In this document: piece after piece, positions 5,269 through 49,400 of the stretch
Numbering within the stretch: the stretch's first letter is position 1
Layout: every line of letters starts with the position of its first letter
Assembly (NCBI RefSeq): GCF_036321535.1
Contig: NC_087472.1
Span: forward strand, 38,254,001 to 38,318,000
DNA: 64,000 bases
Source: Camelus dromedarius
Taxonomy: Eukaryota
Direction: 5' to 3'
Notes under the pieces: generated by a model
The model's input: the letters and a program-made list of their open reading frames with translations, nothing else
Databases searched by the model: none
What the model was told of the DNA's origin: nothing
Program-made: the position numbers and the translations under genes

Positions 5269-5730
5269 ACCCTTTTTTCCCCCCAAGAGGCTGCATAATG
5301 AATTTGAGCACAAAGTTTGGTATTGACTAGAAGGGACTGGAGCAATGGCAAAGTAGCAGGTGAAGACCAGGGGAGAGGAACAATTCAACAAGCTAAGCAG
5401 GAAAAACTAAAGTGAGTAATGGAAAGCTAGTCACCTACAATGGCCTTGCTCTATTTTTTTCTGAGAGTTTTCTCTGCAGGAGAACAGGGAGTGTCTTAAA
5501 TGATCAAGAGTGTCTTGGGCTGCTCTAGCCAGCTACGGCCCCAGTGAGGGAGAAGCTCTGCTGGAAGGACACAGAGGCCTGAATCTCCCAAACAGTGAAT
5601 CACCGGGACTGTTTGGAGAACGCTCCCCAACAGAGAGCAGAATACAGTGAGCTAATGCTTGGCAAAGTGGAGCAACGGCCCAGAAGCTGAGAGCTGCCCA
5701 CCCCTCCCACTTGGCCCAGAGGCCCCATAC

Positions 5731-5842
5731 CGGGGTGTAATACTCCATGATGGGGTAGTGCAGCTTGTTGCCCTTGCTGGCCCTGCCTGTCAAGAAGCAG
5801 GTCTGGCAGATGTCCACATTAAATTGTTTCAGACTCCGGTAC
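5731..5842 (-). CDS. DRP2: DRP2 coding exon 17 (112 nt; ZZ zinc finger, C-terminal half)
   Basis: aag|G TAC CGG...ACC CCG|gtatgg; [37 protein letters not shown]. Confidence 0.97.
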
Positions 5843-8330: not shown

Positions 8331-10007
8331 NNNNNNNNNNNNNCATAAGTCATGGCCAAGCCCGATACAGGAATGGCCAGAGAATGATGTGAGGAGAAAA
8401 AGCAGAAACAGATACAGGGAAAGAGCACATCAACTTAGCTAATGACTTTTGAAACTGGAAACGTAAAGGTCCATCCCTGAGCTTTTAGAAACCCAGGAGT
8501 TCTAAAGAGAGCACCTTCTAGATTCAGAGACAAAAAAATGAGACAGACACAAAGAGAGAACGCAACAGAAAGAGAACGGGAGAGAAGAGTGAAAGGGAGA
8601 GAGCAAGCTGCATATGGGAGCAGTGCCAGACACTGAAATGACACTGCTGGGAAAACAAATTCTCAAGAAGCAAGATGAAGGGGTGTGGAGTTCAAGGTTG
8701 CCTGAACATGAGTTGCAGTCTGTCTGCTCTATCCCCTCCTGTTCATGTAGCCCAAGTAGTCTGATACTGCAGTAATCTCTCAGTTATCCATGCAAAGGGA
8801 AAGAAACACTGGCACAGATGATCCAAAAAGAGGAGATAATTCAACACATTTGATCATTTAAGAATTAGCTCTAAATGACTGAGCTAAGTGAGGCAGACTA
8901 TGTACTTATATTTGAATATGGACACTATCTACTCTTGTGGGAACTCCCCTATCCCACCCCAACTTTAGAAAAACTCCATCAGGGGTTCTTGTCTGCCTGT
9001 TTCATACCTCACCTAATGGCCATAAAATAAACAAATGTAGAAGGCAGAGGACCTGGGTTTTAGTTGTGTATCCATTACTGACTAGCTTGTAAAACCCTGA
9101 GTAAGTCATGAATCTCTCTATGCTGCAGTTTTGTCATTTGTAAATTAAGATTAAATCATCAGTGTCTATCCCATCTTAAAGGAATGTTGGGAGTAATAAA
9201 TTATATCATAGCTATGAACATGCTTTGAAAAGTCTTCTTCCCTGTTAAGTTTTCCTAGATGGTTGTCATCACTCTTCTGTGATCTGATACAGCACATATC
9301 CTTTGCCACTCAGATTATTCTAATTAGCACTTTCAAAAATTCTTTCTGTGTATTTCTGTCTCTTCCCCTGGACTCTAAACCACTTGAGGCAGGGACTATG
9401 TCTAATTGGACCTTGTACTCATCACATTTAGCACAGTGGTCAACACACATTAAGCACTTGACAATTAATGATGCTGATTCAGAAAATTACAAAATGCTGT
9501 ACAAAAGATGGAGGATGCAGGGGAAAGCAAAGGTGCTTTACACCACAGAGGTTAAAACCTACAGAACTGCATACTGCCAGATAATGGGGATTATGGCACA
9601 CTGCCCATGTTATCACATGGGAAGTCTCCAGCAGAAAGTGTGACATGGCTTGAGGTTCAGATTGGGAGAGGGCTAAACTTGATAGGCCACAGGGGAATGG
9701 AACTACAAAGTCCAGGTTCTGGTACCCCAGGATGCCAACTCAGATCATGGTCAAATAATTACATCAGATCAGAAGAAACCAACGCCCTTGGAGTGACCCT
9801 GGGAATAATAACAGGTCTTAGACCCATCTTGGCCTTTGGCTGTTGTGGGTTGTTTGTAATAGCCTGGACCAGGAAGCATTAGAAGGTAGCCCGAGTAACC
9901 CTCGGCTGAGTCATAAGACCAACCTTCTGCTTATCTTACACCCTTCTTTCTCCCACCACACCTCTCCCTCCACCCAATTCCACTCCAGACTTTGGAGCTG
10001 TACTCAC

Positions 10008-10093: not shown

Positions 10094-10311
10094 CTAGATT
10101 TAAAAGAAGAGACTGAGAATATGAATATCGGTAAAGGGTTAACTTCTTGACAGTCATTTCCCTTGCAGAGTTGATCCCCACAGGGCTCTGTGCCAACCCC
10201 AAGCTGAGCTGGGTCTGAGTTCACCATGGGAGCAGCTCCTTGGCCACCATGCCCACTCTAGATGTCCCACTGAATTTCATCCTGGAGGCTGCCAGGGCTG
10301 CGAGCCCTTAC

Positions 10312-10513
10312 CTATCAAAAACATTGAGGAGCCAGTTGAGGCTCATGTCCACACAGAGCGGCACGTTGACCAAAATGCCTCTTTCCTCCTCCAGCCTTTC
10401 ATATAAGGCAGTCAGGCAGTGAATGACCTCCACCACATCCATCACATGCTCACTGGCCTGCAGATCATGCTCATTGAAGATCTCCAGGGCTGTGGTTAAG
10501 GTAACCAGGTCCA
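10312..10513 (-). CDS. DRP2: DRP2 coding exon 13 (202 nt; EF-hand region)
   Basis: cag|TG GAC CTG...GAT AG|gtaagg; DLVTLTTALEIFNEHDLQASEHVMDVVEVIHCLTALYERLEEERGILVNVPLCVDMSLNWLLNVFD. Confidence 0.97.
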
Positions 10514-11420
10514 CTGGGAAGGGAAGGAGAGAAGGAGAAAATACAGCCAAAAGTAGAACCCCAGGGACTAGACAAGGAGATATGGCCTCCAGGATCACCA
10601 AATTTGAGACTCAATCTCCAGACTAACCATTTGTAAGTACGATGCAAGCTTGCCTTTTACCAAGACCCCTCATCCCAAGAAGGGAGAAGGCAGGAAAGGC
10701 CACTTAAATTGGCCCGAAATTCTTCTATACCTGTCTGTTCCTTAACATCAGTTTCAAGAAGATAGAGGAATTTGGGTAAACTCTCAGGGGTCATATACCA
10801 TTTTTTTAACTTTCTCTGACTTTACATATGTTTCAACTACAAATAGGTTTGTCCATGAACCTCATTCTGAGAACCTAGACACTTAGTTATAAAGGCTAAG
10901 TTACGCCTGGGTAAATGTGACATAACTCAGGAGAACTTTTTAATTGCCTCCAATGCAGGAATCAACCTAGCCAGACACGCCTGGGCCAGGAAGATTGGAT
11001 GGACACTATCTCTGAGAAAGGCACATTATGTCTGCAGCCAGGCTGTCCCCTAACCACTGGCATTTGCTTCAACAGTTCTGCTGCTACATCTAATAACCCC
11101 AAGATGGCAAAAGAACACAAGCCCCCAGTGGCTCCAAACCATTTGCTGGATACTTCTTGCCAGTTGTTTGATTATCCAGGTTGAACAGGGAGGAAGGGAC
11201 AAGGAAGAGGATAGTTGTAGGTTAATTTGGAAGGAAGCTTGGGGGTTGGAGAGCATAGAAGGGCCCTGGAAAGAGCAGGTGTCCACAGCCAGCATCTTCC
11301 AGGCTTTGGAGAGGTCCCACCAAGCCAATGAACAACCCTGGCCAAGGTGGGATTAAACTGGGAAACAGATGAGGAAGAATAAGGATGAAGGCCATAAGGG
11401 AAGTGCAATGGGAGACTTAC

Positions 11421-11495
11421 GACGCAGTGCCTTCTGGACTCTGCGTAGCTTCATGGCAGTGCGGTAAGCTGAGAACTTAATGTTGTTCAGATCAG
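11421..11495 (-). CDS. DRP2: DRP2 coding exon 12 (75 nt)
   Basis: cag|CT GAT CTG...CGT C|gtaagt; DLNNIKFSAYRTAMKLRRVQKALR. Confidence 0.97.
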
Positions 11496-11519
11496 CTGCA
11501 AAGAATGGAAAGAAACCCA

Positions 11520-12330
11520 TGCAGATCAGGGAAATGCAAATTAAAACCACAACAAGATACAATTTTACACCTGCCAGCTTGGCAAAAAAAAAAGTATGAC
11601 AATAGCAAGTGTTAGCAAAGATGTGGATGAATGAGAACTGCTGGTGGAAGTGTAAAGTGATACAATCACCTGGGAAAAACAACTTGGCGTGACCTAATAA
11701 AATTGAACATTCACACATCCTAAAACCCAGCCAGCTATATATCCTGGAGCAGTGATTTTCACACATTTTTTGAACCAAGACACACAGTAAGAAATTCTTT
11801 TTACATTACAGTCCAGTATACATACACAAATGTGCACATGTATAAATAACTGAATCAAAAATTTTAGGAATTTTCAGTAGCAAATACATGTGTGTATAGA
11901 GGATCTTATTAAAATTTGACTACCTTTAAAAAAATTTCAGGAAAGAATACCTTACCAAATTTGATAAAGTAGAAACATAACAAAATTAGTATCAATTATG
12001 ACTCTCATTAAGGATCTGTTGCACTTTCATATTTCCTAGTCTATTTTTAATTTTTGTAATGCTTGTCACAACACACTGAAATGATGTTATGAGCTGTAGA
12101 CCGAAAAACATGCACATGTGCACTAGAAGACATGAGCAAGAGCTCCTTAGTAGCACTGGTCTTGTTAGCTCCAAACTAGAAATGACCCAAATGTTCATCA
12201 ACAGTAGAATGGATGAGGAAACTGTGGTATATACAACGGAACACTCTACAGCAGTGAAAATGAATGAATTATCGTCACATGCATCAACATGGGTAAAATT
12301 TACAACATAGTAGTGAATCTGTCTTAGTAG
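11520..12330 (+). mobile_element. Old L1 (L1M/L1ME) ORF2 end and 3' UTR fragments, interrupted by a DNA-transposon-like insert near 11750-12090
   Basis: atcagggaaatgcaaattaaaaccac..., aaactagaaatgacccaaatgttcatcaacagtagaatggat. Confidence 0.7.
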
Positions 12331-16010: not shown

Positions 16011-16399
16011 CTATAGAACCAGGACCCAAGTCCCACAGCACACGGTAGGAAAAAGGAACCATTAGTCATTCAGCTCAGCTCCTCCCTCCTTACCCAGAGA
16101 TTTTGGTTAAATAGCACAACCTCGGTGCTTGCCTGTTAGGGCAGCCAGACTAGGGTGTGGGTGGCCATTTCCTTATCCTCTTCCTTTTCTAGTCTCAGAA
16201 AACACCAGGGAAAGAGAAGACAGTAGAAGGATGGGAGAAAATTCAGTGAAACCAGCTCCCAAATCCAGCAGATAAACTGGGAGAGGCTCTGTTGAAGTCC
16301 AAGCCAACAATAGAGTCTCAGTAGCAGGAACACTGTCAGGGTCTGGGAGGAGCACCTGGTCTCGGGGTGGGCAGTAGCCAGGGGAGGGGGCCTGCATAC

Positions 16400-16668
16400 C
16401 TTAAGAGCCTGGATGTGCTCTGGGAGTGAATCAATGAAGAGATCCCCAATGGGCTCCCAAGTGGCTCGGACTCCCTCAGCCTGGGTCAGAGTCGTGCTTA
16501 ATTCCTCCATTGCCCCTTGGATCTCCAACAGCTGCTCCAGAGTGCGCTCAATGTGACGGTGCTGGTCCACGCAGCGGGCTGTCAGCTTCTCCCATAGTTC
16601 ACTGGCCACCGTTGCCTGCTTCCACACAAAGCGGCTAAGATTCTGGATCCGCTGTCTGGGAGACGTAT
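16400..16668 (-). CDS. DRP2: DRP2 coding exon 7 (269 nt; spectrin repeat)
   Basis: cag|AT ACG TCT...CTT AAG|gtatgc; TSPRQRIQNLSRFVWKQATVASELWEKLTARCVDQHRHIERTLEQLLEIQGAMEELSTTLTQAEGVRATWEPIGDLFIDSLPEHIQALK. Confidence 0.97.
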
Positions 16669-18364: not shown

Positions 18365-19017
18365 CTGTGAAGTTTAGCAACATGGTCAATGGGGAAGGAA
18401 TGTCTTTCAATTGTTTTGAATTCCATCCTGCAATTGACAATCTGTCTTCTCCGTGCAACTTGATCCTTTGGCATTAACCTCTATCTTTGGGCTACTTGGA
18501 CTAAAAGAGGTGCAGTCTTTTCTATAGGAAGAAGAATAATTCTGACCCTGGAATGTCTGTTTAGTCTGAAATAGGACTATGCCACAAGATAGATAGAAAT
18601 GCGAGGATTTGGGGCTAGGAATCTTGGTTCTCTGGAAGACTCAGAAAGTCCTCTGTAAGGGGCTTAGAGAAATCAAAGCCGGGATGGGCAAGATTTATAT
18701 TAAATTTTTAATTACATTTTTGTTGAAAAATACACTGAGAAGAGTAAATAAATCAAAAGTCACCTCGATGCACTGCCAGGAAGTGATTCCATCTCTGTAA
18801 CCAGTACTGAGATGAAGAAAAGAACTCCACCAGCATCCTCTTGTGTCCCCTCCCAGTCATTCTGTCATCCTTCCCCCGACCAAGGTAACTACTATCCTGA
18901 CTTGTAACACCACTTGTAACTGATTAGTTTTGCCCAATTTTGAACTTTATATAAATGGAATCATACTGTATGTGCTCTTTTTGTATCTGCCTTTTTTTCA
19001 CTCAACATACTGTCTTT

Positions 19018-19239
19018 TTTAAACATTTTTTTATTGAGTTACAGTCAATTTACAATGTTGTGTCAATTTCCAGTGTAGAGCACAATTTTTCAGTTATACA
19101 TGAACATACGTATATTCATTGTCAAATTCTTTTTCACTGTGAGCTACCACAAGATCCTGTATATATTTCCCTGTGCTATACAATATAATCTTGTTTATCT
19201 GTTCTACATATGCCTGTCAGCATCTATAAATTTCGAACC
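19018..19239 (-). mobile_element. Young 5'-truncated L1 nested in an older L1M fragment (about 18690-19320)
   Basis: Perfect 17-bp TSD ctcaacatactgtcttt at 19001-19017 and 19240-19256; same subfamily tail as 4670-5125. Confidence 0.92.
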
Positions 19240-20006
19240 CTCAACATACTGTCTTTAAGATTCACCATTGTGGCACACTGTAACAGTTTATTTTCTTGCT
19301 GTATTGTATTCCATTCTGTAATCATCTTTCAAATTGAGACAGAATAGACATATAACACTGTGGAAGTTGAAGGTGTACAATATATTGATTTGACACTTAC
19401 ACGATATGATTGCCATTGTAGTGGCAGCTAACGCCTTTGTCATGTCACATAATCATCATTTCTTCCAGTGTATTCTATATTTGTTCTAAGAAACATCTGT
19501 TGCTATTTTCTGATTTTAGAGGTAATATCTGTCACAGAAATCTTAGAAATTTCAGGAAAGTGTGAAGAAAAAATTAAAAAGAATGCTAATATCATCACTT
19601 GAAGTTAACCATTGTGAAGATTTTGATATAGCTCCTTCTTATGTTTCTGTATGTGTGTATATATGTACACACATCTATATAGATTTTTATATAATTGAGA
19701 TCTACCTGTATATAGTTTTATACCCTGCTTTTTTTTCAGTTAGTATTATATTATGTTCATTTTCCCATGTCCCTGTTATAAATCAGGGCAAAGTTTTAAG
19801 GGCAGCCAATATTGATGGGAAGACTAGAGGGGAAAGAATTGACTTAGCCTGTGAAGTGCTAGCCTCAGACCAGTGGGACTGCATATGGCTTCCCGTGACT
19901 TTCAGCCTCTAAACAGAGACTGGGCATCCATCCATCAAGGTGTGGCAGAAGAGATCCCTTCCCAGTGGAGAGGCCACACACCACGGCCTCTGGAATTCTA
20001 ACCTAC

Positions 20007-43517: not shown

Positions 43518-44529
43518 AAAAAAACCCCTGCATCCCGGAGATGTTAAGTAACTTACTCAAGTTCATAAAGCTAGTAAGACACGCAAGCTGGAATCCCATC
43601 CCCAATTCATTTGACTTCAATGTTGATGCTCTCCTCACTTCTCTCCTTCTTTCAGGCAGGACCTCAATATTCCAAATAGGGCACCTCCTAGAAATGACCA
43701 TTTCTTGTTGCACTTGAGAGCACACACTGACATATCATCTGGCAAGTACCATGGCCACCAACAGGTAGAGGCCCCTTTCAGGGATGCCTTTAAATTCTGA
43801 AGTTATTTTGGAATGTAAAGCAATCCTGGGCCTAATAGACAAGAGCTGTCTATCCTTTATACTGAGTAGTGAGCTCTAGACATCTTGCAAGACAGGCAAG
43901 ATATTTGCTTGACAGAGGCAAAGTGAAAACTTCAAGGTGAGAATCTATTCATGTTAAGAGGATGCCTCACACCACATTCTCTGGCCAATAACCAATCAAA
44001 CGCAGAGCTACCATACTGGTCCCTGCTTAAAGTCACTTTTAAATTCAGTCTTCTAAGGGTGAATAGACTTGGTAGATATCTACTTGGTATGATTTGAGAG
44101 GACTGAAATGCTATCACTAATCAAAATGATTTCCCCCGCTGGCCCTGCTATGAGGTTTGCAATTCCCTACTAAACACTTCTTTCAGGTTAAGGCATCTGT
44201 CAAAATGTAAGTGCTATCTTCAGTCACGATACGTCATACTCATTAGTTCATCACTTTCATTCTCAGCACCAGACAGGTATGGGATACAGGGAAAATCATG
44301 CTGAAGGGGAAAGCAGAGAGAAAGCTTCAGTGTGATGTGTGACAGGCAGCTAGAGTCCAGCAAGTTCAGATCAAGACACTTAGAAACCCCAAGTACCAAA
44401 GACATAATGTTACAAACCCTATATGCCCATATATCATTCAAAATAAAAAATAATATTAACCTGTAAACTAAGCATAAAATGGTTCAACAAAATCTGATCT
44501 TTCCCATAATGACTACTGCAATTCATTTT

Positions 44530-45210
44530 TGTTGCCATACAATTCATTTTTTAAAGCCTACAATTCAAAGGCATTTAGTATATTCAAAGTTGTACAACCA
44601 TCACCAAGATCAATTTTAGAATATTTTCATCACTCTCTCCCCCAAAACAATCCCCATATCAGACACTCCCTATTTCCCTCACTCCCTCCCAGCCATAGGC
44701 AACCACTAATCTACTTCTGGTCTATGTAGATTTTCCTATTCTGGATGTTTTACATAAAAGGAATCCTACAATATGTTTTATATCTTTTGTGTCTGGTGTC
44801 TTTCACTCAGCATAATGCTANNNNNNNNNNNNNNNNNNNNNNNNNNNNNNNNNNNNNNNNNNNNNNNNNNNNNNNNNNNNNNNNNNNNNNNNNNNNNNNN
44901 NNNNNNNNNNNNNNNNNNNNNNNNNNNNNNNNNNNNNNNNNNNNNNNNNNNNNNNNNNNNNNNNNNNNNNNNNNNNNNNNNNNNCTGTGTGTACCAGTTT
45001 TTGTATGGACATATGTTNNNNNNNNNNNNNNNNNNNNNNNNNNNNNNNNNNNNNNNNNNNNNNNNNNNNNNNNNNNNNNNNNNNNNNNNNNNNNNNNNNN
45101 NNNNNNNNNNNNNNNNNNNNNNNNNNNNNNNNNNNNNNNNNNNNNNNNNNNNNNNATTGTCTCTCTTTTTGACTATAGCCATCCTATAGGGTATGAAGTT
45201 GTATTTCACT
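44530..45210 (-). mobile_element. L1MB-type 3' end (partly N)
   Basis: gttgtacaaccatcacc...ggcaaccactaatctactt. Confidence 0.8.
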
Positions 45211-46147
45211 GTGTCAAGCCTTTTTTGAAATATCAAATATCCAGTTCTTCTAAAAAAAAATCTTTAATGCCTCTATTTAGCTGGTTTCCTAACCATATGC
45301 TTGATCTGCCTATTATTAGACCAGCCAGGACTGAGATCAGCTAGAATTGATTTGTTTCCTGGGGTTAGAGGGCACATCAGGGAGGGTCTATCATGTAAAA
45401 CATTTCCAACACCAAACCAAGACACAAAGATGACTAAGCCACACTTCCTGTTTATTAGGGGAGTCAGTCACCTACTCAAACAACTACAAAGTAGAATGAG
45501 AGAAGCACTATAATAAGGCAATGGAAGTACGCAGGAGAATCAGGGCAAACCAGATGCAGTGCTCTCAAAATACAGTGCTAAGCAGCCCCAAACATCAACA
45601 GAGCAGCCTGGCTTCCACCCCTACCCAGCCACAGCATGAATCCAGAGTCTTCTTGGAAACAGTTATAAGAGCAGGGGATAAGGCTCTTAGAGATATACTC
45701 TCCTGGACCTGCGAGGTGTGTTTGTCATTTTCTCATTTCAATTACTATTCATACTTACTACCCACTGGCTGGCTCTTTCAGACTTGGCCTCATTACTTTC
45801 AATCTTATGTCAATTTGTAGGACCACACTGAAGAACGGTTATAAAGTGCTTTGTAATTCTCAAGTGAATTATAAATAATAATTGCAATCTGCTTACCAAC
45901 AACAACCAAATCCTATTCCAGTAGGTCCTCATTGCCCTCTCCTTAATCTACCATTTTACCTGAATTATTCCCATTACACCTCTTTGCATCAGTACATCCC
46001 AACTTCTGGAGATAATGCTTGCAACAAGCCAAGCCTCCAGAGAGCCTTTGCAATCTTAGAAGCACTTTGATTCAGTATTTTGCTTAGGAAATAGAACCAA
46101 GCCAGAGAGGTTGCTCCCATCTCATAACGGAGAGACAACTTATGAGC

Positions 46148-46497
46148 GTTACTATGAGGTGTTCCTGAAGAGCGACCGTGTGGCCTGCGTGGTGCAGAGT
46201 GGGGGCTGACCCACCAATGACTCTCAGGTGGTCTTCAAGAAGCACATTGAGAAAAGGGTGCGGAGCCTGCCTGAGACTGATGATCTCAGCAAGAAGATGG
46301 TGCTGAGTTCCTGGAGAGCCAGGTTTGATGCCATTTACCTCAGGGAGGAGGACACCAGGAAGCAGCAGGCCAGGATGACGGCCAGTGCAGCTTCTGAGCT
46401 GATTCTGAGCAAACAGCAACTCTATGAAATGTTCCAGAACATTCTTGGGATCAAGAAGTTCAAGCACCAGCTTCTGTACAATGTTTGCCAGGTAAGG
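46148..46497 (+). pseudogene. CADPS: CADPS (CAPS1) partial copy: end of exon 2 joined to all of exon 3, then a 5' splice site
   Basis: [113 protein letters not shown]|gtaagg. The exon-3 part is 333 nt with no indel and an in-frame TGA at 46207-46209. Residues [20 protein letters not shown] and FQN favour CADPS over CADPS2. Confidence 0.92.
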
Positions 46498-49400
46498 TTT
46501 CTGTCACTTGGACCCAGAGCAGGGCATGGAGAAATTACGTTATCAGAATGAAGTTCTGTGTGTCCTCCCTCTCTTATGCCCCCTTCAACCCATGAGAAAA
46601 CTGCAGCTATTAAGGATGTGGGTTTGGGGTACCCACTCCCCAGGTCCCAAGACTTTCTCCTGAGAGAAGCTAAGAGTAAGTGGTCTGCCTGAGCACAGCT
46701 AACTCACCTTCAGCAGACCAGAGAAGGTAATTTCACTTTTGAACTGCTCTCTACTTTTCTGAAGTGCAATTCAATTGTGCTTGAAAAGTCAAGCACAACC
46801 TAATTGCCCTCAACCATCTGTCTAAACCCTGCTCTGAGCAATGGGCCAGGGCTTTGTAAAAACACATGATTCTGCCTGAGGGAGGCCTTGGAGGAAGCCC
46901 TTTGGAAAATAGAGACCTCTACTCATTAATTTATTTCTTCAAATACTTATTGACCACTTACTAATTTTAATATTTCAGAGTAGTAATAGCATAGTGGTTA
47001 CCAGCACAGGAAGGCCAACTTCCTGGGCTCAAATTCTGACTCTAATGTCTGCTTACTGACTTTAGTTGCTCTCTGGGCAAAATGAAAATAATAAAATTAC
47101 TCATGCCATAGGGTAGACACGGGGATGAAATGAGATTCATACAGGAAGTGCCTAGCACATTGCCTGGTGCACGGGAAATTTTCAGTAAACGCTAGCTAAT
47201 GTTGCTATTCATGCAGGATCAGACCATATCCATCAGGGATCAATGAACAGGAGTAAAATTTTACAGCCCTTTGGCCAGTTTCATGGGCCCACTGCTGTAA
47301 CTGCTCTGGGGAAGAAGCATATGCTGAGAAGAGTGGTAGGAAAGGTGTTGTGATTGGAGGAGGTAACATAGAAATGACACTTGGATGCCAGAAAGCCACA
47401 TGTTGCACTACTGTAGAATATTAACACCAAAGAGGAAATTATTGAACATCAATACATCCTGCTCTGGGATAAATGATTCCTACTAACACAACCGAGCTTC
47501 TGCCAGTCCTGTTTTCTATCATACAACAAAGAGCTCAATGCAGACTTAGGGAAGTGACTGTTAGGTGAAAAGCCCGGAACCTAACAAATTATTCCAACTT
47601 TCTCCCAGTAGCACTTTTGTTGGATTAGTCCTGTGAGTTGGGGTACCTCAATTGATCCCAAAAAAGGGCAAAATATGGTGGTGAGAATATCCAACTGATG
47701 AGCTAACTGAGGAGAGGATTGATTTAGGATGACCTTGAATGGGTAGAGGGTCTTTTGCTGGGACAAGGCTCAAAAGGAAGTGAAGGTGAGAATACTGTTT
47801 TGACCATGCTAATGGCTGTCAAGCAGGAGTCTTTAACCCCATGCCTGACTTTCATGTTTATTGAGCATCTACTCTGTGCACAGTAGTGCTGAGCATTGTA
47901 AGGAATACAAAAGAAGCAACAAATGAACTTCCTGCTTCCAAACTGTTATTAAACTGCAGCGGAAAAATAGTCTGCATTTTCTGCCTATAACTGGTCTCCA
48001 GATTGGAGAGTACAATGGTAACAGCTGCACTAACTCAATTCACAAAGTGACATAAAACCATGCATGGGCACTTCTGTTTGTTATAGGACGGCAGCCAGAA
48101 CTGTATAAAATTCTATGCTTATGTTCTCTGTTGCACTAGTCTCTCATTGGACTGGCCATCCATAGTCTTTAAACAATAACCAACCCAGTGAAATGTCTCT
48201 GGCCCTCCCAGGGAAGGGCTGGTGGGCCCCAAGGGCATACACATCATTGGGTTACCATCACTGGGCATTCCTGTGCCGGCTCTGCTGTTTCCTCTCAAGT
48301 TCCTTTGCCATTTGAAGGCCGTTTTTGTTTTCCACTCCCGAAGGGCTGAACCTCAGAAACCGTGGGGGTGGTGAACAGCCATTTGTGAACTATCTAGTTG
48401 TGCAAGAACCAGGGCAATGGCAGACTGAGCAGAATGAACCCAGAGCTCCAAGGAGCCACCAACCCACACATCAGTACACTCTCCAGGTTCCTGTGTCCAA
48501 GTTCCTCACACCTCCCCCTGAGGGTAAGAAGCCTCACAGTGAGGGGGAGGGACCAGGCAAGGCAAGTAATTTTCTAGGATTATTTTTCTCTTCTACAAAA
48601 CGTTCTCAAAAAGTTCTCCTCTGCTGGTCGGGGCGGGTTAGGTGTAGTTCTGCTGAAAGCCAAGAGACAGCCCCTTCCAGCCACATGAATATCTGGTTAT
48701 ACTTCCTGACCCTCCCAGAGATAAGCCACGTTTAGCACCCACAGTGTCTAGTCTTTTTTTCTGTTCAAATCTACCAAGAGCCAAGCTACCCGAAGGATCT
48801 CTGTTTATTGAAAGCTTGCTCCTACTGCTATTACTAGGTCTTTTTATCACCTTTTCCTCCTCTTGGGGAAGCTCAGTGACTAAGAAACGAATTCTGACCA
48901 CAAGGGAAAAGAGTCTATGAGACTGCTAAGAGGGGATGATATTTAAACTGACCACCAGGCAGAGCAGGGCATTCCAGGCTGAAAGAGTGACAAGACCAAG
49001 GGTGAAGAGGTATGTAAGGGCATGGCGGGTTTAAGAAAGTGAATAGTTCAAGAACAGCTGAGTGGGGCTGCAGTGGAAGGTAGCAGTGAAGTGAGAATGA
49101 TGCCCAAAAGACTGGAACAAAGTAGGGTGGGGCCGAACGTGAAGGGCATTGAGTGCCAGGTTAAGGGGGTGGATTACTCCTCCAGGCAATGGGGTGTTCT
49201 AAGTAGATAAAGCACAATCCAGTCCACGTTTACCAAGAGAGCTCTGTGGAAGTAAGGAGGCTTGATAGGCAGAGGTAAAGAGACCATTGAGGAGGCTCTA
49301 GCAAAGGGCTAGCTAAGAAATGAGAGCCATGTCTAGGGCAGTGGCAGTGGCAGTGGGAACTGAAACGTGGCAGATTTGAACATACTACGAAGCAGTAAAC

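Follow-up and report, generated by a model that had tools for sequence, protein, structure and literature searches.

The upstream region of DRP2 in Camelus dromedarius carries a dead piece of another gene, the secretion gene CADPS, and this piece lies on the opposite strand to DRP2 within the window that we analyzed (the whole 64,000-nucleotide stretch of contig NC_087472.1). It neighbors a gene of the dystrophin family, whose EF-hand_2 exons lie on the minus strand. The piece, ~406 to 420 nt long, starts with the final 14 nt of CADPS exon 2 and continues through the whole of exon 3 into the first ~59 to 75 nt of intron 3. Searches of the 64-kb window with long CADPS/CAPS proteins (tblastn) found none of the other CADPS exons, including LDNPDE, and returned noise only. 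In Camelus ferus, the parental gene lies on scaffold KB016643.1 (locus L007) and the copy on KB017782.1 (locus L008), a different genomic location.

The exon limits of the parental gene were verified on L007 and on read-through open reading frames (ORFs) of many species. Exon 2 ends in ...CCAGAGTTACTATGAG (QSYYE), directly followed by GTAAGA; intron 2, which is 10 kb long in camel, closes with the pyrimidine-rich acceptor ...CCTTACTCAG, and similar tracts occur in other parents; exon 3 runs from GTTTTCCTG to TGCCAG, after which the intron opens with GTAAGAGG. The read-through ORFs pass from ..LQ into VFLKS and from NACQ into V.., and spliced CADPS products join QSYYE to VFLKS, and NACQ to LDNADEQ or NALQ to LDNPDEQ. 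Exon 4 was not found in 23 kb of parental sequence, so intron 3 is longer than 23 kb.

Exon 3 is present in full on the plus strand at 46159 to 46491 (333 nt, 111 codons), and its gap-free alignment to the camel parent bears out the indel-free copy that had been claimed there. It differs from L007 18975 to 19307 at 42 of 333 nt (87.4% identity); 32 of these differences are transitions, and 16 fall at parental CpG positions. An ungapped blastn match pairs window positions 46157 to 46525 with L007 18973 to 19341 at 87.26% over 369 nt, and identity of the exon copy to five other CADPS parents ranges from 79.6 to 86.2%. The translation of 46159 to 46491 reads VFLKSDRVACVVQSGG, then a stop, then PTNDSQ...LLYNVCQ. 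The stop is an in-frame TGA at 46207 to 46209 (plus strand), which occupies a parental Cys codon and is TGC in the aligned Camelus ferus copy (L008).

Junctions of the CADPS copy

The 14 nt at 46145 to 46158 on the plus strand (AGCGTTACTATGAG, coding for ..YYE) abut exon 3 and mark the 5′ limit of detectable homology. They match the end of exon 2 (L007 8880 to 8893) at 13 of 14 positions with no gap, a match that takes in the 46148 to 46158 segment originally assigned to that exon. With at most one mismatch allowed, the exon 2 14-mer AGAGTTACTATGAG has a single occurrence in the window, precisely at 46145 to 46158, where 0.05 would be expected across the window, and this uniqueness covers the 128 kb of both strands together. 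A model composed of exon 2, exon 3, and intron 3 begins to align at 46145 and reaches 310.4 bits; a genomic model (intron 2, exon 3, and intron 3) begins only at 46155 and reaches 299.1 bits, which leaves the spliced model ahead by 11.3 bits. The parental intron-2 end has TTACT..AG in common with the exon-2 end, but its fit is poorer (a 2-nt gap, 9/12). Had the parental acceptor ended in GTTACTATGAG, the junction would have pointed to a duplication of DNA; it ends instead in CCTTACTCAG. No polypyrimidine tract lies upstream of the exon 3 copy, so both the spliced junction and the missing tract are seen as predicted, and comparison of the last 300 nt of intron 2 with window positions 46000 to 46158 gave nothing above the null (P about 0.1). 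There is one splice junction only, and it rests on 14 nt.

An apparent extension of exon 2 farther upstream, in which tblastn without composition correction reached back to 46027 through NGET and SKQQLQ look-alikes, was rejected as chance. Set against a null of 1500 other window segments, the upstream extension gave P values of 0.28 to 0.89, and nhmmer with exon 2 alone gave no hit.

On the 3′ side, GTAAGG stands directly after the exon 3 copy. This retained 5′ splice donor and the first 34 nt of intron 3 occupy 46492 to 46525 on the plus strand and match L007 19308 to 19341 at 29 of 34 positions, ungapped; the similarity to intron 3 on which the original prediction had staked itself is therefore present. 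A 26-mer from this intron (+9 to +34), with up to three mismatches allowed, occurs once in the window, precisely at 46500 to 46525, against 0 occurrences expected. The intron continues at 46526 to 46567 (plus strand; parental positions about +35 to +59), which is the 3′ limit of detectable homology. This continuation is broken by a secondary insertion of ~20 nt that resembles a local duplication (ATGGAG...ATGAAG), includes TTCTGTGTGTCCT, which is identical to L009, and is not significant on its own in an unanchored test. The nhmmer alignment with L007 reaches 46572, and that with a four-parent profile reaches 46566, with an envelope end at 46586. Beyond lies the zone in which the insert ends (46568 to 46606, plus strand). 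The expectation that 46492 onward would follow intron 3 to an endpoint marked by a poly(A) signal or A-rich tract holds for the match, to about +59; no poly(A) signal or tail was found at that endpoint. From this zone on, no stretch aligns with the 23 kb of camel intron 3 or with the other parents; chains of small matches that run to 47289 under lenient settings, which we considered as intron 3 beyond about +59, do not rise above the null (P of 0.045 to 0.6) and have no profile hit.

Template and route of integration

We consider it very probable that the fragment is a dead, RNA-derived, short semi-processed retrocopy of camel CADPS. The exon 2/exon 3 junction and the start of intron 3 together indicate a template RNA that lacked intron 2 and held intron 3. 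Retrocopies are recognized by the precise loss of at least one parental intron, which leaves an exon-exon junction, and by a new location, and the fragment has both; it also combines, within one copy, the absence of intron 2 with the kept start of intron 3 that marks a semi-processed retrocopy. The template would have been a CADPS transcript from which the 10-kb intron 2 had been spliced out with the >23-kb intron 3 still attached, and ~406 to 420 nt of this RNA would have been copied by reverse transcription into DNA that became fixed upstream of DRP2. The source may have been a nascent transcript, a simpler source than intronic polyadenylation; every nascent CADPS transcript passes through this state as the polymerase traverses intron 3. 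Comparison with the camel parent upholds the predicted removal of intron 2, retention of intron 3, RNA template, and 5′ truncation in exon 2. The intronically polyadenylated template that was offered along with them is unsupported, because the intron piece ends before the parental A-rich tract (~+95) and has no poly(A) signal or tail.

A poly(A) tail is absent from the copy: the end zone offers only GAGAAAA (46594 to 46600), with 4 A's. Neither is there a significant TSD. The repeat search found no direct repeat at the ends of the insert, and manual comparison gave chance-level pairs only. The weak candidates, both on the plus strand, are ACAACTTATG at 46135 to 46144, the decamer that immediately precedes the insert, paired at 7/10 with AAAACTGCAG at 46597 to 46606, or else GAGACAACT against GAGAAAACT at 8/9, with chance probabilities of 0.13 to 0.25. 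The absence of TSD and poly(A) reported from the sequence at the outset accordingly stands.

Against this background we weighed the reading that the copy is a classical L1 retrocopy whose template was a CADPS isoform polyadenylated within intron 3, with a tail and TSD that have since decayed, and we regard it as doubtful. Its appeal is that the 3′ end of the copy does lie within intron 3, that L1 events are typically 5′-truncated, and that an A14 tract near +95 of intron 3 in the camel parent could imitate a tail or prime reverse transcription; GAGAAAA stands at a roughly colinear position, and the pair at 46135 to 46144 and 46597 to 46606 is TSD-like. Homology, however, stops at ~+59 to 75, ahead of that tract, which is itself short or broken in other parents; neither AATAAA nor ATTAAA occurs in the first 95 nt of the parental intron; a non-CpG decay of ~7% should have left an A-rich run, yet there are just 4 A's; and the TSD candidate is at chance level.

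How the semi-processed copy entered the chromosome is a separate matter. Since both of its ends lie inside the transcript, and neither a poly(A) tail nor a convincing TSD accompanies them, we lean, with a slight and tentative preference, toward a cDNA patch caught at a chromosome break, that is, an endonuclease-independent integration akin to the class 2 templated sequence insertions (TSIs) discussed below. An abortive or internally primed L1 event is possible though unlikely, and the later shortening of a longer CADPS copy by deletion is somewhat less likely again. A chimeric retrocopy joined to a small RNA or a repeat was rejected: Rfam gave a sub-threshold mir-218 match only (20.7 bits against 62), and within the sequences compared the flanks showed no repeats.

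Age, decay, and coding status

The fragment stands at the same place in Camelus ferus. The copy and the camel parent have in common an 11-nt deletion in intron 3, whereas L004, L005, L009, and L012 all keep those 11 nt, and the copy has two of the four camel-unique exon 3 states of the parent. This common deletion and these two states place the origin of the fragment on the camelid lineage, ahead of the divergence of the living Camelus species. A maximum likelihood tree for placing the copy had open forks, and the placement rests on these rare changes. No other protein has the 16 private residues of the copy; a metagenome scan recovered two ordinary parental CADPS loci only, and protein-based look-ups recovered parental CADPS loci only, apart from one Camelus ferus gene model. 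That model, the hypothetical protein CB1_001639003, includes the copy, and the statement that no CADPS copy had been described beside DRP2 has to be amended to this extent.

Judged by its substitutions, the copy looks to be decaying largely neutrally. On its own branch, 41% of CpG positions have changed, against 6.7% elsewhere, and its 34 changes divide into 19 nonsynonymous and 15 synonymous, besides the stop in Camelus dromedarius. Purifying selection was considered and rejected; the pairwise dN/dS of 0.17 is misleading, and the polarized changes fall only marginally below neutral. The nonsynonymous fraction of 19/34, compared with a neutral 0.68 to 0.71, is a weak deficit (P of 0.02 to 0.055), and together with the absence of indels across the 333 nt it leaves a little room for past constraint.

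The same observations bear on a second alternative, in which the fragment is, or once was, a putative exon of a camelid-specific transcript that was, or in some species still is, translated; the retained donor at 46491/46492 would let this transcript splice from the CADPS-derived frame to sequence farther downstream, as the Camelus ferus gene model has it. We hold this to be improbable. The frame is intact and annotated in Camelus ferus, but the gene model is supported by its own annotation entry alone, and Camelus dromedarius has the in-frame TGA; of the four exon differences that separate the two Camelus species, two affect the protein, one as a stop codon. The indel-free 333 nt carry less weight when only about 3 indels would be expected, as does the open frame when 34 neutral changes would leave it free of stops with a probability of about 0.4, and the nonsynonymous deficit is offset by a synonymous decay that GC-rich third positions inflate. 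In three runs labeled probable RNA, 16 to 30% of sampled locus words were found, but these words may be DNA carry-over or unspliced background. Least probable of all, and almost certainly wrong, is a duplication, at the DNA level, of exon 3 and its flanking intron sequence in which the YYE-coding 14 nt resemble exon 2 by chance: an intronic 3′ flank is what a DNA copy would have, and TTACT..AG occurs in the intron-2 end (CCTTACTCAG) as in the window, but intron similarity is confined to the 3′ side of exon 3, whereas the gap-free 13/14 match, unique in 128 kb, falls exactly at the junction, the pyrimidine tract is missing, the last 300 nt of intron 2 do not rise above the null upstream, and the genomic model, 11.3 bits lower, stops aligning 4 nt before the exon.

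Comparison with known systems

Read as a semi-processed retrocopy, the CADPS fragment preserves a clean, checkable record of a splicing intermediate: in the germ line or early embryo of a camelid, a 10-kb intron had been removed while the next, of >23 kb, was still attached, as co-transcriptional splicing predicts. It has no bearing on CADPS or DRP2 function. It does call for caution in two respects, as the annotation of Camelus ferus makes it a protein-coding gene and standard retrocopy pipelines, which look for several exons and little intron, would overlook it. Short, tail-less, RNA-derived patches may outnumber what catalogues of mammalian processed pseudogenes suggest. If the empty site has end-joining scars, the fragment would be an ancient, fixed case of RNA-templated break repair.

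Semi-processed retrocopies have already been documented (PMC3449122, PMC2584115), and the CADPS copy has in common with them a partly spliced pre-mRNA template, the loss of one intron with retention of another, and a new location. The textbook cases, however, are near full length, end in a poly(A) tail, are bracketed by direct repeats, and include functional copies, whereas the CADPS copy is a dead fragment of ~420 nt that bears one spliced and one unspliced junction and neither a tail nor clear repeats. Nor does it match the pattern of a classical L1 processed pseudogene, as it lacks a poly(A) tail and still has the donor and start of intron 3.

In class 2 TSIs, a distant transcribed locus supplies the RNA template for a short patch, which can hold both intronic and spliced exonic sequence and has no TSD, poly(A) signal, or tail (Onozawa and Aplan, PMC5110952). 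The CADPS copy resembles them as a short RNA-templated insert (~420 nt) with no tail and no significant TSD. Class 2 TSIs, however, are defined at polymorphic or induced breaks by microhomology, microdeletion, and untemplated bases, whereas the CADPS junctions date back tens of millions of years.

A survey of humans and great apes found that 12 to 16% of great-ape retrocopies are truncated at both ends and that a tail is missing from about one-third to one-half of retrocopies (10.1101/2020.06.07.139212). Doubly truncated, tail-less processed pseudogenes of this kind are, like the CADPS copy, RNA-derived, cut short at both ends, and devoid of poly(A). With its requirement for 3 or more exons and little intron sequence, a pipeline like that of the survey would pass over the CADPS copy, which has ~1.04 exons and an intron start. 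The CADPS fragment is, in sum, a clear, small example of an already known type of pseudogene.

A CADPS copy from a partly spliced template

The exon-3 copy of CADPS at 46159-46491 on the forward strand was identified by translation and protein search. Among 5.8 billion proteins, the single 100% match was a Camelus ferus hypothetical protein, CB1_001639003 (P0001), followed at ≤85% identity by many CADPS and CADPS2 exon-3 ORFs, from which the exon limits were taken. Products of genomic read-through give ...LQ before VFLKS on the upstream side and NACQ before V(R/S/G)... on the downstream side, and spliced products join QSYYE to VFLKS (protein matches P0036, P0122, P0124, P0127, P0128, and P0130) and NACQ to LDNADEQ or NALQ to LDNPDEQ (P0144, P0206). 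P0124, another gene model from that Camelus ferus assembly, led us to 42 kb of parental camel CADPS (locus L007). There, exon 2 (8780-8893) ends in ...CCAGAGTTACTATGAG followed by GTAAGA, the 10-kb intron 2 ends in ...CTGTCCTTACTCAG, and exon 3 (18975-19307) runs into GTAAGAGGTCTGTCACC...; exon 4 was not found in the 23 kb 3' of this exon.

Directly 5' of the exon-3 copy lie 14 nt (46145-46158, AGCGTTACTATGAG) that align ungapped with the last bases of exon 2, agreeing at 13/14 positions. When both strands of the window were searched with AGCGTTACTATGAG at ≤1 mismatch, the only match was exactly 46145-46158, with 0.05 expected. The original prediction had named a matching intron-2 acceptor as grounds for a DNA duplication instead; the true parental intron-2 end fits worse, having only TTACT..AG in common with the window and costing a 2-nt gap. 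An nhmmer model of exon 2, exon 3, and intron 3 scored 310.4 bits with its alignment starting at 46145, and the model with intron 2 in place of exon 2 scored 299.1 bits, starting at 46155. A search of the sequence upstream of the copy with the 300 nt at the 3' end of intron 2 gave nothing above the null, and the pyrimidine tract and (C/T)AG found at the intron-2 acceptor of 4/4 other mammalian parents are both missing at this place in the window. The exon-2 match, the model scores, and the lack of intron-2 similarity and of a pyrimidine tract together show that the template had lost intron 2.

On the 3' side, the ungapped blastn alignment does not stop at the end of exon 3 but reaches 46525, and its intron-3 part has 29/34 identities, a level equal to that of the exon part; the intron-3 26-mer (+9 to +34) occurs once in the window, against 0 expected. 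Once the copy in Camelus ferus and additional parents (L009, L012) were included, the alignment extended to ~46566, parental +59, across a ~20-nt secondary insertion that resembles a local duplication. The sequence after 46491 is thus similar to intron 3, as the original prediction had proposed, and its semi-processed CADPS retrocopy is borne out by both the exon-2 end and the intron-3 start. These junctions show that the template was an RNA from which intron 2 had been spliced out while intron 3 was still present.

Extent, flanks, and genomic setting

The insert runs from 46145 to ~46567-46586, with an original length of roughly 406 to 420 nt. Past ~46566, neither the 23 kb of intron 3 from camel nor any other parent could be aligned, although the parents are well conserved among themselves in the stretch beyond +59; the parental A-rich run begins at ~+95, outside the homology. 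Upstream of 46145, NGET and SKQQLQ resemble more exon 2 and were attributed to chance by null tests. No further CADPS exons occur in the 64-kb window. The insert has no poly(A) tail, and a repeat search and our own calculation put its target site duplication candidates no better than chance, in keeping with the earlier failure to see either. The flanks are unique sequence, and no small-RNA partner was found for them; a sub-threshold Rfam mir-218 match at 46765-46808 (+) (20.7 bits, E 0.15; gathering score 62) was treated as chance. An L1-like fragment recognized by eye lies at ~44500-45240 (+), N-masked at 44822-44984 and 45019-45155, with an A9 run at ~45250; it precedes the CADPS fragment by ~0.9 kb and is not contiguous with it. 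A MIR-like SINE at ~46960-47210 (+), seen by eye and in weak nhmmer cross-matches to CADPS-intron repeats, marks the downstream flank as old DNA.

Dystrophin-type exons with Pfam EF-hand_2 lie on the minus strand at 10308-10601 and 11353-11778, with ZZ-like and spectrin-like ORFs recognized by eye on the same strand at 5533-5817 and 16136-16627. They fit a DRP2 gene oriented right to left, in agreement with the predicted neighbor, and place the copy upstream of this dystrophin-family gene on the opposite strand. CB1_001639003 is a 163-aa model assembled from a 2-codon first exon, the CADPS fragment, and a downstream exon (~48003-48056) reached via the retained donor (window 45521-48056, corresponding to 10001-12537 of the orthologous Camelus ferus locus, L008); it is very likely an annotation artefact. 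Sequencing runs X20, X19, and X18, flagged as probable RNA, contain 16 to 30% of sampled 31-mers of 46100-46920; the 7% in another organism's run set probably comes from a 33-nt stretch identical to true CADPS.

Age and decay

L008 is 99.2 to 99.7% identical to the window, which marks the latter as DNA of a different Camelus. In intron 3, CCCAG is followed in all four non-camel parents (L004, L005, L009, L012) by ~11 nt that are missing from both the camel parent and the copy; the gap maps to L007 19330-19335 (~+25), and this loss is a lineage marker that may serve camelid phylogenetics. The copy has two of the four camel-unique exon-3 states. Polarizing the exon-3 differences with three close parents assigned 34 changes to the copy's branch and 6, all synonymous, to the camel parent's. 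The common gap, these states, and the polarized changes point to an origin part-way along the camelid branch, before the two Camelus species split; an ML tree did not resolve the copy's placement. Non-CpG divergence on its branch (6.7%) suggests an age of tens of millions of years, given uncertain rates.

The pairwise dN/dS of 0.17 between copy and parent is misleading because synonymous sites changed in the parent too and are CpG-rich. On the copy's own branch, 19 changes are nonsynonymous and 15 synonymous, and 41% of CpG positions changed. Simulations gave an expected nonsynonymous fraction of 0.68 to 0.71 (P = 0.02 to 0.055 for the observed value) and a 0.40 to 0.43 chance of no stop codon. 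Relative to Camelus ferus, the exon part has a stop at 46209 (TGA; TGC, Cys, in Camelus ferus), a Val/Leu difference at 46180 (G/T), and two silent differences (46344, 46395), and the intron part a 2-nt indel at 46525/6 and one substitution at 46530. This ~1% divergence is similar to that of surrounding DNA. The fragment is under essentially neutral decay, with at most a faint hint of past constraint.

Possible routes of formation

Intron 3 (>23 kb) could be removed only after its full transcription, and intron 2 would be removable once exon 3 emerges. Because intron 2 would leave early and intron 3 late, we infer that exon 2-exon 3-intron 3 is the normal state of nascent CADPS RNA, requiring no special isoform. 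The fragment is tailless, with both ends internal to the transcript, which is compatible with the capture of a short cDNA patch at a break, for which class 2 templated insertions are a precedent (PMC5110952), and also with an L1 event that was abortive or internally primed; a longer copy with later deletion would be a third route. It is common for retrocopies to be tailless and truncated at both ends (10.1101/2020.06.07.139212).

No CADPS retrocopy link was found in the literature searched. Semi-processed retrocopies are already recognized as a class (PMC3449122), and retrocopy pipelines make room for them (PMC2584115); the CADPS fragment is real, yet a small addition to that already known class.
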